DNA from: Octopus sinensis | Lineage: Eukaryota | DNA length: 64,000 nucleotides | Direction: 5' to 3' | NCBI RefSeq assembly: GCF_006345805.1 | Contig: NC_043019.1 | Coordinates: forward strand, 17,173,360-17,237,359 | Shown here: positions 23,446 through 64,000 of the stretch, one piece after another | Numbering within the stretch: position 1 is the stretch's first letter | How the letters are laid out: every line of letters begins with the position of its first letter | Program-made: the position numbers and the translations under genes | Notes under the pieces: model-generated | What the model was told of the DNA's origin: nothing | Seen by the model: the letters and a program-made list of their open reading frames with translations, nothing else | The model's database searches: none

Positions 23446-24521
23446 AAAACAACTGTTCATCAAACAAATTTAATATTAAATTTACCTCTTACTTTAAGTT
23501 TTCTATACAATATTTTTATAAATGTATTATTTTGTAGAGTATTTTATCTAGAAAATTATTCTAAATAAAGAATAACTTTTAATATAAAATAATTGCTGCA
23601 GATGAGATTTTTTTATTTTTACATATGACATTTTGTTAAGAAGTTTCTAATCTAAGGGAGAAAACTTTAATCCTTTCTCCTATCATGTTTACATTTTATA
23701 ACATTTACTATTAAAATTGACAGGTGGTACTGAAATATTGCAATTTATTTTCAGTTTTGTTGGGGTTTTTTTTTTGTCTTCCAATTTTATGTTGTTTCAG
23801 AAAGGAGTAACTAAGTTTACCAGTAAATTTCATAATCAAAATGCTACAAAAAGACCAAGGAAATTAACAATCACACATGGACATTATTTTTAGCACAAAT
23901 GACTATTTACATACAATAATGTAAAAGAAAAAAAAAAAGAAACTAAATCTTTTTTTGTTTTGGCAATATTAGCAATTTTAAAAATAATTTGACTATAAAT
24001 AAATACACTACAAGCAACTGAATAATAAAACTAATCTTTAGGCATCACCCACTCAGTCATAACAATCACTTAAATTTCCCAGGGTTCTTCACATTTTTGT
24101 AACATGAGCATAAAATTATTACATAAGAAAAACACGTTCCAGATGTTCAGAGTACCAACGTCTGAATTTCATATAAACCTTACATTGGTAATGAAAGTTC
24201 ACTACAAACCAGTCAGACGTATGTAGTTCACTCAGACATGTGTACTCAAAACCAATCGCTTTCGGATGTACTCTGTGTGTGTTAAGAAGAAGAGAAAAAC
24301 CCCAAGTTTACTCCTAATGGTTTTTCACACATTAACTACAAGATCGTCAACAATGTAATAAACACATGTAAACACCTATTGGATGTAAACAAAATCAAAA
24401 ACCAACCAACCGACTGACTGACCAATCACATACCTGATCTAGCATGCAATGAAGCAGAAAAAGGCAATATCTAGAAGAATGTGGTAAAGGACTGTTATCT
24501 TGGACAAATAGATGGACAATC

Positions 24522-24943
24522 GGCGCAGGAGTGGCTGTGTGGTAAGTAGCTTGCTAACCAACCACATGGTTCCGGTTTCAGTCCCACTGCGTGGCATCTT
24601 GGGCAAGTGTCTTCTGCTATAGCTCCGGGCCGACCAATGCCTTGTGAGTGGATTTGGTAGGTGGAAACTGAAAGAAGCCTGTCGTATATGTATATATATA
24701 TATGTGTGTGTGTTTGTCCCCCTAGCATTGCTTGACAACCGATGCTGGTGTGTTTATGTCCCCGTCACTTAGCGGTTCAGCAAAAGAGACCGATAGAATA
24801 AGTACTGGGCTTACAAAGAATGAGACCGATAGAATAAGTACTGGGCTTACAAAGAATAAGTCCCGGGGTCGATTTGCTCGACTAAAGGTGGTGCTCCAGC
24901 ATGGCCGCAGTCAAATGACTGAAACAAGTAAAAGAGTAAAAGA
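24522..24943 (+). mobile_element. SINE family A with a 36-bp internal tandem duplication
   Basis: GAGACCGATAGAATAAGTACTGGGCTTACAAAGAAT twice at 24786-24857. Confidence 0.92.
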
Positions 24944-25773
24944 ATCAACTGTCATCAAAAGTGTGAGAGCCAACTTCCCCCCAGCAGCTGTTGGAAGTCT
25001 TCCCTCCTAAAACAGCCATGATGCAGGGGATTCAATGGAAGCATTAAGATGAAGAAGGTGGGGGTCTTGTTTACAAGCTTTCATCGTTCATATTTCACTT
25101 GTTTCAGTCATTGGTCTGTAGTCATGCTGGAGCACCACCTCCCAGTACTTATTCTATTGGTCACTTTTGCCAAACTGATAAGTTTCAGGGACATAAACAA
25201 ACTAACACCAGTTTTCAAGTCGTGGGTGGAGTAGAGGAGAAACACAAACACACGATACACTTCCACAGTTTCCATCTACCAACTCTACTGCCAAGGTATT
25301 GGCCAGTCCAGGGCTACAGCAGGAGACACTTACCAAAGGTACCATGCATTGGGACTGAACCCAAACCCACATGGTTGCAAATTGAACTTCTTAACCACCA
25401 CCTGTGCCTAAATATAACTGTGACAACCAGGAAAAGAATCTGTACAGTAAGAGGAAGATGAAAATGGTTGTTCTGAACTTAGCACCCCAAAGAAATCAAG
25501 ACTTGTCTGCTCAGATTTGTGACTGGTTCAGCAATGGAACATTAAATGTTGCTCCAGCTGGTAATCAGTGATGTATCACCTGTATTCAGGTAAATGGATC
25601 TCACACTGCCCCTTTCTTCTATATTGTTGCCTGTGGTAAATTCAAAGCAACTTGCAATGAAATCTTTGGCTTTAATTTCGTTCCATAGTGTGGAGCATGA
25701 CACAATAGCTAGCAAGGTATCAATACACACACAAGACACACACATATATATCGCCTGCTTACGTATGCCTGAT

Positions 25774-26103
25774 GAAGGTGCATGGCTCAGTGGTTAGAGC
25801 TTTGGGCTCACAATCATGAGGTAGTGAGTTCGATTCCTGGATAGGGCTGCATGTTGTGTTCTTGAGCAAGACACTTTATTTCACATTGCTCCACTTCACT
25901 CAGCTGTAGAAATGAGTTGTGATGTCACTGGTGCCAAGCTGTATCAGCCTTTGCCTTTCCCTTGGATAACATTGGTGGCATGGAGAGAGGAGGTAACCAC
26001 TGGTCTTCCATAAACAACCTTGCCCAAACTTGTGCCTCAGAGGGTAACTTTCAAGGTGCAATCCTATGGTCATTCATGACCAAGAGGACTCTTTACCCTT
26101 TAC
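25774..26103 (+). mobile_element. SINE family B
   Basis: A-box TGGCTCAGTGG, B-box GTTCGATTCC and CTTTACCCTTTAC tail; copies at 35857-36192, 39019-39367 and a variant at 62003-62300. Confidence 0.9.
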
Positions 26104-42360: not shown

Positions 42361-42607
42361 CTGAAATTAATCCAATTTTCAAAATATAAAAATTTGATGA
42401 CAAAATTAGATCAGTTCACATCATGAATATAATGGCGGTGCCCCAGCATGGCCACAGCTCATAAGCTGAAACTAGAATCAATCAATCAATCAATCATAAT
42501 ATTTGCATACTTCTTCATAATAGCTGTAGAGTCCTCATTACCTTCCTACATAGCAATAACTCCAAGAATGTGTAGTAATAATAGTGAACATACTGATCAT
42601 TAAACAT

Positions 42608-42989
42608 ACTCTTTTACTCGTTTCAGTCATTTGACTGTGGCCATGCTGGAGCACCGCCTTTAGTCGAACAAATCGACCCTGGGACTTATTCTTTGTAAGC
42701 CCAGTACTTATTCTATCGGTCTCTTTTGCCGAACCGCTAAGTAACGGGGACGTAAACACACCAGCATCGGTTGTCAAGCAATGCTAGGGGGACAAACACA
42801 GACACACAAACACATACATATATATACGACGGGCTTCTTTCAGTTTCCGTCTACCAAATCCACTCACAAGGCATTGGTCGGCCCGGGGCTATAGCAGAAG
42901 ACACTTGCCCAAGATGCCACGCAGTGGGACTGAACCCGGAACCATGTGGCTGGTTAGCAAGCTACTTACCACACAGCCACTCCTGCGCC
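42608..42989 (-). mobile_element. SINE family A
   Basis: Full-length copy, close to consensus. Confidence 0.92.
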
Positions 42990-43401
42990 TATGTTCATTC
43001 ATTATATATATATTATGTTTAATTTGCAGTCTAGATCTCTTGTTGGTAGTTTCACAAATCAGAAGGCTGGACGTGTACATGTGTGTGTGTGGATGTGCAG
43101 GCATGACTGTATGGTTAAGAAGCTTGCTTCCCAACAGAATGTTTCAGGTTCAGTCCCATTGTGTGGTATTTTGAACAAGTATAACCCTAGGCTGAGCTGA
43201 CTAAAACCTTGAGTAGATTTGGGAGACAAAAACTAAAGAAGCCCATTGTGTGCGTGCATGTGTGTGTGTACATATATATATATATATATCTCTAATGTAG
43301 GATAAATTTTTTTTTTTTTTTGAAAAAAAAAATTTTTATCAAATTTTTTAAAGGTATTTTAAATACCTTTAAAAAATACCTTTAAAGGTTAAATTATAAA
43401 C

Positions 43402-46887: not shown

Positions 46888-47056
46888 GGCGCAGGAGTGG
46901 CTGTGTGGTAAGTAAGTAGCTTGCTAACCAACCACATGGTTCCAGGTTCAGTCCCACTGCATGGCACCTTGGGCAAGTGTCTTCTACTGTAGCCTCGGGC
47001 CGACCAAAGCCTTGTGAGTGGATTTGGTAGACGGAAACTGAAAGAAGCCAGTCGTA

Positions 47057-47096
<40 letters not shown>

Positions 47097-47332
47097 TATA
47101 CATGTATGTGTGTGTGTGTGTGTTTGTGTGTCTGTGTTTGTCCCCCCTAGCATTGCTTGACAACCGATGTTGGTGTGTTTACGTCCCCGTCACTTAGTGG
47201 TTCGACAAAAGAGACTGATAGAATAAGTACTGGGCTTACAAAGAATAAGTCCCGGGGTCGATTTGCTCGACTAAAGGCAGTGCTCCAGCATGGCTGCAGT
47301 CAAATGACTGAAACAAGTAAAAGAGTAAAAGA
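46888..47332 (+). mobile_element. SINE family A
   Basis: Full-length copy with an expanded central (TA)n(TG)n. Confidence 0.92.
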
Positions 47333-47404
47333 GTCAAACATATCTCTCTGGAAACTCATAAATTTCCATTATTTGTAACTAAAAAAAGGTGAAGAAAAAA
47401 AATC

Positions 47405-48372: not shown

Positions 48373-48498
48373 TTCATGTGCGGGGCAGGTTTTCAATTCT
48401 CTTCTAATAAATGCTTGGCAATGCTTGATTTAATGAATGAACATAAAACTGGAAAATGGTAGAGACTATGTGGGTACAAGACAGCATTATATAAACAA

Positions 48499-48865
48499 CT
48501 AGCAGTATCGCCCGGCATTGCTCGGGTTTTTAAGGGAAATAACTATATAAGCATTTTTAGAGATGTAAAGTATAATAGCCATCTCAATATGGCTAACCAC
48601 AAAGGGGGCGGGTTACTGTAGCTTTTTACGTTCTGAGATTTAATAATAAATTTTTAGAGAGTTACATATATGCCAAAAATGGGAAAAATTGATGGTAAAT
48701 TTTTTTTTAAATCGTAGACTCGCGCTAATACCCAGAAGGGCTCGATATGAATCACGACTATAAGATACCCGGTTTTGGTTAAACTGCACCACAAAATGTG
48801 GGAGTAGTTAGGAATCTAAATCGTAGGAGACAGACAGCACACAACTTCACTTTTATATATAAAGA
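48499..48865 (-). mobile_element. Non-autonomous Helitron, copy 1
   Basis: On the minus strand: A|TC start, 3' hairpin CCCGAGCAATGCCGGG, CTAG|T end, no TSD. Confidence 0.9.
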
Positions 48866-48917
48866 TATCAGAAATGGAGAATTGTAATTAACGAAAAAGT
48901 GAAAAACAAAAGTTTAC

Positions 48918-51446: not shown

Positions 51447-51610
51447 TTAATATTAATTAGTAATTTATGGTAATTAATATCAAAATAACTGTTCCAAGAG
51501 CAAGAGATAATGGTAGAACAATTTGATGATTAATTATCTGTTTGTCAAAGGATATGAAGATGGGGAAAGCAGCTAGCTTATTAGGGATAGTTGTTGAGAT
51601 GCTGTATATA

Positions 51611-51988
51611 TCTTTATATATAAAAGTGTGGTTGTGTGCTGTCTGTCTCCTACGATTTAGATTCCTAACTACTCCCACATTTTGCGGTGCAGTTTAACCA
51701 AAACCGAGTATCTTATAGTCATGATTCATATCGAGCCCTTCTGGGTATTAGCGCGAGTCTACGATTTAAAAAAAAATTTACCATCAATTTTTCCCATTTT
51801 TGGCATATATAAGGGAAGTAACTCTCTAAAAATTTATTATTAAATCTCAGAACGTAAAAAGCTACAGTAACACGCCCCCCCCCCTTGTTGTTAGCCATAT
51901 TGAGATGGCTATTATACTTTACATCTCTAAAAATGCTTATATAGTTATTTCCCTTACAAACCCGAGCAAAGCCGGGCGATACTGCTAG
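51611..51988 (+). mobile_element. Non-autonomous Helitron, copy 2
   Basis: A|TCTTTATATATAAAAG start, CCCGAGCAAAGCCGGG hairpin, CTAG|T end; inverted relative to copy 1. Confidence 0.92.
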
Positions 51989-52029
51989 TATTTGATGAAA
52001 GAAGGGTCAGGAAAGTCACCTACAAAGTC

Positions 52030-55782: not shown

Positions 55783-56115
55783 CTGAAATATTAATAAAAG
55801 AATGATGAAAAGAAAGAAACTTTTATTTCAACAATAACACATTCATTTGACAATATCCTATTTCCATTTAGGGCAAAGATCTGTCTCCTTTCGGCAATGA
55901 TCAACTAGTTGTTGGACCAAGATGTCTTTTCCAAGACATTTAAGGTTTGTTGATAGTTTCATTTTCATGAAGTACCTCCACAAAGCATTGTACTCTGAGA
56001 ACAACTGTCAATTCACTTGAGGTGGTTTTAACCATTGAAAAAATCTGCAGGAAACCCCCATCAACCTCAACAACTTTGCCATCAAATAATTGGTACATTT
56101 TTTCAACATTATGTT

Positions 56116-56285
56116 GCAGGAGTGGCTGTGTGGTAAGTAGCTTGCTAACCAACCACATGGTTCCGGGTTCAGTCCCACTGCGTGGCATCTTGGGCAAGTG
56201 TCTTCTGCTATAGCCCTGGCCAACCAATGCCTTGTGAGTGGATTTGGTAGATGGAAACTGAAAGAAGCCTATCGTATATATGTAT

Positions 56286-56325
<40 letters not shown>

Positions 56326-56480
56326 TTACGTTCCCGTCACTTAGCGGTTCGGCAAAAGAGACCGATAGAATAAGTACTGGGCTTACAAAGAATAAGTCCC
56401 GGGGTCGATTTGCTCGACTAAAGGTGGTGCTCCAGCATGGCCGCAGTCAAATGACTGAAACAAGTAAAAGAGTAAAGAGA
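56116..56480 (+). mobile_element. SINE family A (internal deletion)
   Basis: Consensus head and tail present. Confidence 0.9.
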
Positions 56481-60899: not shown

Positions 60900-61148
60900 C
60901 TGAAAAAAGAAAAAAAAAGTCATTTAGTCTTTCAACATATTAGAAATACTAAAATATTTTCATTGCTTTGCTTTAAACAAACAAAAACTCTACAAGAAAA
61001 GATAAATTGTAACAATTATGAAATTAAAATTTAGCAGGTAGGAATTGAAAATAAAATGTAACAACCAAAGTGAAAATGAATTATTACACAAAAAATGATC
61101 AGTAAACATTGTCCTTCCATTTTAACAAAGAGAAATAAATTTTAAAAC

Positions 61149-61549
61149 TTTACTCTTTACTCTTTTTACTTGTTTCAGTCATTTGACTGCGGCCATGCTG
61201 GAGCACCGCCTTTAGTCGAGCAAATCGACCCCGGGACTTATTCTTTGTAAGCCCAGTACTTATTCTATCAGTCTCTTTTGCCGAACCGCTAAGTGACGGG
61301 GACGTAAACACACCAGCATCGGTTGTCAAGCAATGCTAGGGGAACAAACACAGGGGAACACACACTTATATATATATACATATATATACGACAGGCTTCT
61401 TTCATTTTCCGTCTACCAAATTCACTCACAAGGTATTGGTCGGCCCGGGGCTATAGCAGAAGACACTTGCCCAAGATGCCATGCAGTGGGACTGAACCCG
61501 GAACCATGTGGTTGGTTAGCAAGCTACTTACCAAACAGCCACTCCTGCA
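61149..61549 (-). mobile_element. SINE family A
   Basis: Full-length copy. Confidence 0.92.
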
Positions 61550-62002
61550 CCTATATATTTTTTTTTTACATCTGACATTATTCGTTACTGATTTCTAACC
61601 ATTTAGAATAAACATTTACTAATTTTTAATGAGTTTTAATCAACTTTAGAACCACATATCTTATTAAAGAAAGGAGCAGATTGGTGGAACTAGTAAAGGG
61701 GTGAACAAAATGTATCATGTCTGTATTTAGATCCCTTTATGTTCTGAGTTGAAATATTGCTGAGGGCAAATATCTCCCTTCCTCCTTTAGAGGTTGATAA
61801 AATAAGTAGGATTTTTATGCTCTGCAGTTGGTTCAGTCAGCCACAGCCCTCGCCTTGTGTCAATTTGAGAAACCAGTATTTTATTCAAAGTATTTTCCCC
61901 ATTTCTTGCATAGGAGGAATTAATCCCTTCGAGACCATCCCTCAAATGAAATTCACTGTCCATGTGGTTCAATTATGAATTTGGAAAACAGAGAAAATAC
62001 AT

Positions 62003-62300
62003 AGCTTAGTGGTTAGGGGTTTCAGCTCACAATCACAAGGTCGTGAGTTCAATTCCTGGTGGCATGTTGTGTCCTTGAGCAAGACACTTTATTTCACGTT
62101 GCTTCAGTTTACTCAGCTGACAAAAATGAGTTGTACCTTGTATTTCAAAGGACCAGACTTGTCACATTCAGTCTGACACTAAATCTCCTTAAGAACTACA
62201 TTAAGCATGTCTGTGGAGTACTCAGCCACTTGCACATTAATTTCACAAGCAGGCTGTTCTATTGATTGGATCAACTAGAACACTCATTGTAACTGACAGA
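62003..62300 (+). mobile_element. SINE (family B head, distinct 3' body)
   Basis: GCTTAGTGG A-box and GTTCAATTCC B-box; 62072-62247 forms one arm of the inverted repeat. Confidence 0.85.
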
Positions 62301-62533
62301 GTGCCAGATTTTTTTTAATTTGGAAAATGATAAAATAAATTGAAGGATTTTGTCAAGTAACTTACTTTTTCATTATCAAGTTGGTGTGGGAACATAACTT
62401 AGCAAAAAGTTCTTTCACAGAATTATAATAGGTTCCATTTTACGCAAAGACACTTTAAAATGATGGGTTTAAATGATGTACTTTCATGTGGACTGGTATG
62501 AAAATGTGAAAAGAACTGGAACCACAGACTTAC

Positions 62534-62808
62534 ATTGTAAAGGATTTTGTTTGATTAACAAAGTATTCAAACAGTCAAGGGTGTTGAAAACATCCATTGA
62601 TTTTCCTGCTCTGATAATTGGTTCTAGAATAGTGTTCAAGAAATGGGGTGTCCAGTCATGAATGACATAAGCAACCTCACTGAAGGAACTCGTAGCATCA
62701 TCTTTAACTTCGCTCTCAGGAACAGGACTCTGTGAGTTAGTATTAGAAAATTTTATGACAAGTGACTGTTCCCAGGATGTTTCATCAAGGGTCAACGGTA
62801 TTTGACTT
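62534..62808 (-). CDS. TUBGCP5: Gamma-tubulin complex component 5, internal exon (most 5' one in window)
   Basis: Long polypyrimidine acceptor (ttctctttttctttctag) and GTAAGT donor; 275 nt, phase 2 to 1. Encodes ...FLNTILEPIIRAGKSMDVF..., matching my recall of GCP5 FLKPVLKQIIMAGKSMQLL. Confidence 0.93.
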
Positions 62809-62853
62809 CTAGAAAGAAAAAGAGAAAAACAGAGAAATCAGTGTATTTTTAAG

Positions 62854-63029
62854 TGTGAAATTAATGTGCAAGTGGCTGAGTACTCCACAGACATGCTTAA
62901 TGTAGTTCTTAAGGAGATTTAGTGTCAGACTGAATGTGACAAGTCTGGTCCTTTGAAATACAAGGTACAACTCATTTTTGTCAGATGAGTAAACTGAAGC
63001 AACATGAAATAAAGTGTCTTGCTCAAGGA
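62854..63029 (-). repeat. 176-bp inverted copy of 62072-62247
   Basis: My base-by-base comparison shows 2 mismatches in 176 nt. Confidence 0.95.
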
Positions 63030-63379
63030 TACAATTATCCAGTATTTAGCAATGTGTTTATTTTCCGGTATTCTGTGAGATAGCTGGCCTTGGAGAAATA
63101 TCTTGCCTGGAAACAGGCGAGGACTGGCACAAGGAAGGGCATTTGGCTACAGAAAATCTGCCTTAATAAGCTTCCATGCAAGCATGGAAAGGCAGTTGTT
63201 GAAAACAATGATGATCATGATCTACACACACAGAGGTTAAATAGAGTGAGACAACAAAGCCAAAGCAGCATGAAATTTCTAGGACATTTATAAAGAGAAG
63301 GGTAGCCTTACAGCTGTTTTGGGTATTTCATCAGAGTCGATGTGAGAGAGTTAAATAGAAGGAAATTGTAGAATTCATT

Positions 63380-63756
63380 ATAAGAAGTTATTTTGGAAAG
63401 GGTGAGATACAGGAAGTACAAAGGGAAATATAAGAATAGAAATAAATATATATGTTGGATGTTAAACTTGGTGTTCCATTATCCAAAGAATGTCTTGTAC
63501 AGAATGGGTAAAAAGGCTTCTTGTCCCTGGTGTGTCGGTTCCAATAGGAGTTCACTATCCATTTGTAATAACAAAATATGAACTCTTATCGGAACCTACA
63601 TACCATGGACAAGAAGCCTTTTTATCCATTCTATACAACACATTCTTTGGATAATGGAACAAGTTTAACATCCAACATATATTTTGATTTTTTACTCTCA
63701 GATTTTCTTTTGTACTTCCTGTATCATATCTCACCCTTTCCAAAATAACTTCTTAT
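63380..63756. mobile_element. Foldback MITE
   Basis: ATAAGAAGTTATTTTGGAAAGGGTGAGATA...TCTCACCCTTTCCAAAATAACTTCTTAT; arms about 175 bp. Confidence 0.88.
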
Positions 63757-64000
63757 TTTGAGTTGTGTCTGGGAGAGTCATTTTCTTTTTGTGCCTTATA
63801 ATGTAACACACTCACCAGTAAAATTTCCACTGATTTCTTATTTTCCTAAAATTTTTGTTGCGTCTTGCAACCGTCTGGCACCTATGCCGGTGGCACATTA
63901 AAAAGCACCCACTACACTCACGGAGTGGTTGGCGTTAGGAAGGGCATCCAGCCGTAGAAACATTGCCAGATCAGACTGGAGCCTGGTGCAGCCTTTTGGC

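Follow-up and report, generated by a model that had tools for sequence, protein, structure and literature searches.

In a 64,000-nt stretch of the Octopus sinensis genome (the window, in whose coordinates all positions are given), one coding exon of a putative GCP5 (TUBGCP5) gene lies between two nearly identical SINE segments in opposite orientation. This locus raises the question of how the two segments came to stand on either side of a single exon, and of what such a pair may do in the transcript that contains it.

The inverted repeat and the exon that it encloses

The repeat finder placed two arms of 181 nt each at 62067-62247 on the plus strand (arm A) and at 62854-63034 on the minus strand (arm B), with 98% complementarity and a spacing of 606 nt. 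Arm A covers approximately SINE positions 75-255 of a larger element, copy A, which is antisense in the pre-mRNA. Arm B, which is in gene orientation, consists of an internal SINE fragment only and is referred to as copy B. An inverted repeat identical at 174 of 176 positions had been reported in the initial annotation of this DNA, and direct base comparison of 62072-62247 with the reverse complement of 62854-63029 gave the same 174/176, with two mismatches in those arms. For the extended arms, 62067-62247 and 62854-63034, 178 of 181 bases were identical as reverse complements. The differences were three substitutions without any indel: C versus T at 62097, G versus T at 62116 and a third at 62071, which is present only in the 181-nt version. 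All three fell in the 50 nt nearest the SINE-5' end of the arm, and the 131 nt that follow (62117-62247) were perfectly matched. Under uniform scatter, with either end counted, the probability of such clustering was about 0.04, a value calculated by hand from three mismatches, which is a small sample. In the alignment, copy A had the state of the other family members at 62071, 62097 and 62116, and copy B had the derived state. The expected number of chance occurrences of a 26-nt piece of the arm in the window was 0. Homology stopped abruptly at both arm ends; ungapped identity past them was 18/60 (30%) and 14/60 (23%), which is the random level.

The loop of 606 nt contains a 275-nt exon on the minus strand (62808..62534), in agreement with the loop of about 606 nt and the enclosed exon of 275 nt claimed before. 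TTTCTAG stands directly before the exon, the donor GTAAGT (62528..62533, minus strand) was read directly after it, and one frame is open. The acceptor AG (62810-62809) and a 43-nt polypyrimidine and branch-point stretch, with CTGAT as a candidate branch point, together occupy 62809..62853 on the minus strand, between arm B and the exon and outside the repeat. The upstream arm, meaning upstream in the transcript and thus 62854-63034 in window coordinates, had been said to end 44 nt before the AG; its placement was correct, but the measured distance was 43 nt. In transcript sense, arm A lies 286 nt downstream of the exon donor. Since 275 = 3 x 91 + 2, skipping of the exon would shift the frame.

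A joint search against solved structures was made with seven open stretches of the minus strand from 46.5 to 62.8 kb, the exon included, and these matched GCP5 chains in colinear order. The top five matches were GCP5 chains of vertebrate gamma-tubulin ring complexes, with E values from 4e-17 to 3e-16 and five to six colinear segments, whereas GCP6, GCP2 and GCP4 chains were far behind in the same search (E 1e-3 or weaker). When the exon was searched by itself, only GCP5 chains were retrieved, at residues 520-578 and weakly (E ~1). The exon aligned to approximately residues 520-580 of vertebrate GCP5 and carried the motif FL..IL.PII.AGKSM. A Pfam search of the exon returned no family, and neither the exon peptide nor the conserved GCP5 segments joined into 213 aa matched any entry in a protein-database search. 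As the best and colinear structure matches were to GCP5 rather than to GCP2, GCP4 or GCP6, the earlier naming of the gene as TUBGCP5 is supported at the level of sequence, and the host gene is taken to be a GCP5 homologue.

Anatomy of the two SINE copies

Copy A lies on the plus strand at 61992..62316, its 5' limit being approximate, and is composed of a head, a central domain, a subfamily-specific body and a T8 end. The tRNA-like head contains an A box motif, TAGCTTAGTGG, at 62002-62012 and a B box motif, GAGTTCAATTCC, at 62045-62056. The T8 end (62309-62316) directly precedes the 3' target-site duplication, AATTTGGAAAA, at 62317..62327, a perfect 11-nt repeat of the 5' flank at 61978..61988 and longer than any other direct repeat that the two flanks of copy A share. 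A direct repeat of this length was reached in 6 of 2000 flank shuffles, and the best non-self match of the tail region (62312-62340) was the 5' flank at 61973-62002. The central domain is common to three other copies in the window, placed at 25772, 35854 and 39020 in the alignment and at 25781, 35863 and 39054 in the identity comparison, with 78-82% identity; these copies share the head as well, and their 3' body differs. The head was recognized by its A and B box motifs and its homology to the three copies; ARAGORN called no tRNA gene in it and Rfam gave no match, so the label "tRNA-type" rests on the box motifs and on homology to the other copies. Rfam applied to 61000-64000 returned only a sub-threshold miRNA-like match, located in a neighbouring palindrome. 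By these features, copy A is a complete SINE, probably of tRNA type, with a target-site duplication.

Like tRNA-derived SINEs with a conserved central domain, copy A combines A and B box motifs, a central domain common to other subfamilies, a subfamily-specific body and a target-site duplication. It differs from tRNA-derived SINEs with a poly(A) or short-repeat tail, as its T8 end is neither poly(A) nor a short tandem tail. The other three copies in the window end in CTTTACCCTTTAC, so that 3' ends, and perhaps LINE partners as well, seem to differ between the two subfamilies. A 24-nt pattern from the body had no matches in metagenome and prokaryote-genome collections, and a central-domain pattern had none in viral contigs. 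The central-domain pattern did retrieve one unrelated metagenome contig, L001 (Ga0126338_10020221), in which a tRNA-derived SINE at 2440-2477 has the first 28 nt of the central domain, GTGTTCTTGAGCAAGACACTTTATTTCA, without any difference. Only these first 28 nt of the domain are in common with copy A, and head and body are different. The comparison suggests that the central domain is that of a SINE superfamily with a wide distribution.

Copy B corresponds to positions ~75-255 of copy A only, without the head, without the last ~69 nt and without a tail. The longest direct repeat between its flanks was 6 nt, a length reached in 271 of 2000 shuffles, so that no target-site duplication was recognized. 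In a classical target-primed retrocopy the 3' end is retained, a target-site duplication is present and any truncation is confined to the 5' end. Since copy B has neither a 3' end nor a target-site duplication, it departs from this scheme on both counts. The head and 3' end previously described as missing are indeed absent from the minus-strand copy B, while the plus-strand copy A is complete. The description of copy B as unlike a normal 5'-truncated retrocopy also fits, as head, 3' end and target-site duplication are all lacking and homology ends abruptly.

The identity of the two arms was compared with that of other repeats by self-comparison of the window. Among 134 repeat pairs with a length of 100 bp or more, the median identity was 77% and the 95th percentile 88%, and the A/B pair ranked first. 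The arms had been claimed to be closer than other same-family pairs in the window, and the 78-82% identity of the other three copies bears this out. The body part of the arm (~62135-62247) was found in only two copies in 64 kb, 606 nt apart. Second in identity was another inverted pair, also inside this GCP5 gene but unrelated to A/B (48498-48868 / 51608-51989), with 94.5% over 382 aligned bases including two indels. Its substitutions numbered 10 in 371 aligned bases, and this divergence of 2.7% was not distinguishable from that of the A/B pair (3/181 = 1.7%; Fisher p = 0.56). Once this pair is counted, the A/B pair is no outlier, and the exceptional identity attributed to it was overstated. 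As the second pair is nearly as alike, young mobile DNA exists in the genome, and high identity alone is not proof of local copying. The case for local copying rests on the structure of copy B and on proximity.

Both copies of the second inverted pair have the same termini, ACTAGCAGTATCGCCCGG ... TATATAAAGATAT. They showed no long target-site duplication, and no other copy was present in the window. The spacer of ~2.7 kb holds at least two GCP5 exons, which makes this a second candidate exon-looping pair. The whole window is very repeat-dense, with 233 self-matching pairs. An abundant repeat family of ~400 bp, with 79-93% identity, in both orientations and also inside GCP5 introns, occurs at 61127-61555 and in at least six other places, for example 42607-42992, 24519-24940, 46888-47337 and 56115-56479. 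In the intron just upstream of arm B in transcript sense lies an imperfect palindrome of 393 nt (63372-63764), with arms of ~190 nt that are ~84% complementary and a centre near 63566; it has no other copy in the window. The sub-threshold Rfam match mentioned above falls on the centre of this palindrome (63521-63612) and is to mir-2006, at 31 bits versus a gathering score of 90. It probably only mirrors the hairpin shape of the palindrome.

Origin of copy B

We lean, by somewhat more than an even chance, towards copy B being a local inverted copy of part of copy A that was made at the DNA level by template switching or break repair. This reading is favoured by sequence anatomy, since head, 3' end and target-site duplication are absent, the ends are abrupt and the only relative of the body in 64 kb is 606 nt away. 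Proximity separates it from independent insertion: closeness is expected for local templating, while the chance of an independent insertion so near, at the density of body copies in the 64 kb, was estimated at ~3%.

The proposed history has two steps. The first, which is established, is the retrotransposition of copy A in antisense orientation into the intron downstream of the GCP5 exon, leaving the 11-nt target-site duplication. In the second, which we infer from the anatomy of copy B, 181 bp internal to copy A would have been copied at the DNA level, as the reverse complement, into the upstream intron at 43 nt from the acceptor. This would probably have happened by a replication template switch and return, or by break repair in which the nearby SINE served as template for filler DNA. 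For template switching there are documented cases in which a single event gave an inverted copy and a perfect hairpin (PMC5453318, PMC8794818), and repair filler copied from nearby sequence has been documented (PMC1920257). Copy B resembles the template-switch mutations of the four-point model, which create RNA hairpins and new miRNA stems, in being a reverse-complement copy of nearby sequence and in yielding an instant stem; its source, the sole other body copy in the window, is 606 nt away. However, the described events are mostly of tens of bases and very near their source, while 181 bp and a 606-bp spacer are involved here. This is long for the short-range switches of primates and argues against a template switch. 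Microhomology at the junctions was 0-1 nt, which gave no positive signature of template switching. The clustering of the substitutions near one junction fits error-prone synthesis beside the switch point in a very recent event. It fits equally an older pair that was partly re-homogenised by conversion.

A rather unlikely alternative, though the most serious one, is that copy B is an independent, endonuclease-independent and RNA-mediated capture, at a break, of a truncated cDNA from a young, active SINE subfamily. The closeness of copies A and B would then be a coincidence, or copy A itself would have been transcribed nearby. LINE and SINE insertions of this type at double-strand breaks are truncated at both ends and have no tail or target-site duplication (PMC1920257), and copy B, which is truncated at its 3' end and lacks both, carries these described hallmarks. 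A possible active source exists in copy A, with its intact-looking A and B boxes and T8 terminator, and young repeats do occur in the locus, as seen from the second inverted pair. But insertions of this kind come from RNA and can land at any genomic position, whereas here the nearest relative in the 64 kb is at 606 nt, which speaks for local DNA as the template. In the whole 64 kb there are just two copies of the subfamily body, 606 nt apart. Endonuclease-independent insertions are moreover rare relative to classical ones, and no extra nucleotides were found in the flanks of copy B.

It is improbable that copies A and B are an older pair kept alike by gene conversion, with copy B as an old fragment homogenised through non-crossover conversion or template switching. 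The three mismatches in the first 50 nt followed by 131 identical nt would fit a conversion tract over an older pair of ~6% divergence, and PMC8604942 documents that arms of inverted repeats are homogenised by template switching. Three mismatches are however a small sample. With no diverged homology outside the arms, conversion leaves the missing head, tail and target-site duplication of copy B unexplained, and it may account for maintenance only, not for origin. Where a local inverted duplication or ongoing gene conversion had been proposed, the local DNA-level copy is therefore favoured by the anatomy of copy B and by proximity, while conversion as an origin is not supported, as diverged homology is lacking past the arms (18/60 and 14/60). 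Conversion could still keep part of the arms identical.

An assembly artefact, in which the inverted copy arose from a chimeric read or a polishing error, is very improbable. Fold-back reads can yield short inverted duplications, but all three differences between the arms are substitutions, with no indels, and the unique loop contains an intact, correctly oriented conserved exon with consensus splice sites, both of which make misassembly unlikely. The window also contains no runs of N.

Gene conversion between two pre-existing full SINE copies is likewise not supported: it should leave recognisable homology, though diverged, past the converted tract, and the flanks were at the random level (18/60, 14/60). 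Three further origins were considered and rejected. Twin priming or a Penelope-type inverted 5' copy does not apply, as the arms are separated by 606 nt of host sequence, conserved exon included, which do not form one insertion unit. A foldback element or MITE with 181-bp terminal repeats that captured the exon is contradicted by arm A, which forms part of a complete SINE that has a target-site duplication of its own. If a full-length copy B had been trimmed instead, two deletions would have had to occur without scars, one of them leaving the polypyrimidine tract intact, in the short time set by the 1.7% divergence.

Predicted RNA structure and possible meaning for the host gene

The predicted duplex of the two arms has an energy of -325 kcal/mol and comprises 67 G-C, 111 A-U and 1 G-U pairs (179 bp) with 2 mismatches; the difference at 62097/63004 becomes a wobble pair in the transcript. 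When a pre-mRNA segment of 1021 nt was folded, the stem was dominant, and the mean pairing probability was ~0.985 in the arms versus 0.34 in the branch-point and polypyrimidine stretch, which is predicted to stay mostly unpaired. The very stable pre-mRNA stem that had been claimed is thus reproduced by the folding model.

The pre-mRNA could close this 179-bp, near-perfect stem round a 606-nt loop that holds the exon, both splice sites and the branch-point stretch. Such a stem would bring the donor and the acceptor of the exon together, so that some back-splicing or skipping would be favoured, and ADAR or Dicer would find in it a long double-stranded substrate. Stems as long as 179 bp are classic targets of Dicer and of promiscuous editing by ADAR. 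By analogy, formation of a circRNA, frame-shifting skipping and ADAR editing of the exon are hypotheses for this locus.

By analogy too, the layout would work like that of the inverted-repeat-flanked circRNA exons of mammals and flies. Repeat-driven circRNAs are described as having canonical splice sites and, in the introns on either side, complementary repeats 30-40 nt or more in length (PMC4201285), an arrangement that is present here. As with inverted Alu pairs and mouse Sry, complementary repeats are located in both adjacent introns and the splice sites are canonical. The complementarity is far above the 30-40 nt that suffice for circularization in minigenes (PMC4201285), and 275 nt is a single-exon size. 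Typical SINE pairs at circRNA exons are diverged, while the arms here are 98% identical. In contrast to the Alu and Sry type, one arm consists of an internal fragment not derived from ordinary retrotransposition, the upstream arm ends just 43 nt from the acceptor, and circularization is predicted from the layout. The outcome is also set by more than thermodynamics, and longer repeats can inhibit circularization and give no guarantee of it (PMC4201285). In its origin, the locus resembles the creation of hairpins by template switching, at a larger scale.

The feature is of an ordinary kind, a neat example that combines known kinds and adds no new one. That the inverted copy is a very recent, possibly polymorphic variant which measurably alters GCP5 output, through a single-exon circle or a frame-shifted skip, heavy editing, or dicing into small RNAs against the SINE subfamily, is a long shot. 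Since the exon is frame-breaking and the gene essential, a strong effect should be under selection. If such an effect were true, the locus would be a natural before-and-after experiment in which one template-switch event created a circRNA or hairpin-RNA locus.

Most known stem-flanked exons depend on two chance retrotranspositions. If the origin proposed here is confirmed, the locus would show cleanly, and in a form that can be dated, how a single inverted copy of a SINE fragment, made at the DNA level, gave a long stem round one exon. Its appeal lies in being a clean single-event case in which the exon breaks the frame and the gene, which acts in microtubule nucleation, is essential. Sister species, or different alleles, could then be used to compare the exon with and without the stem for splicing, circularization and editing.
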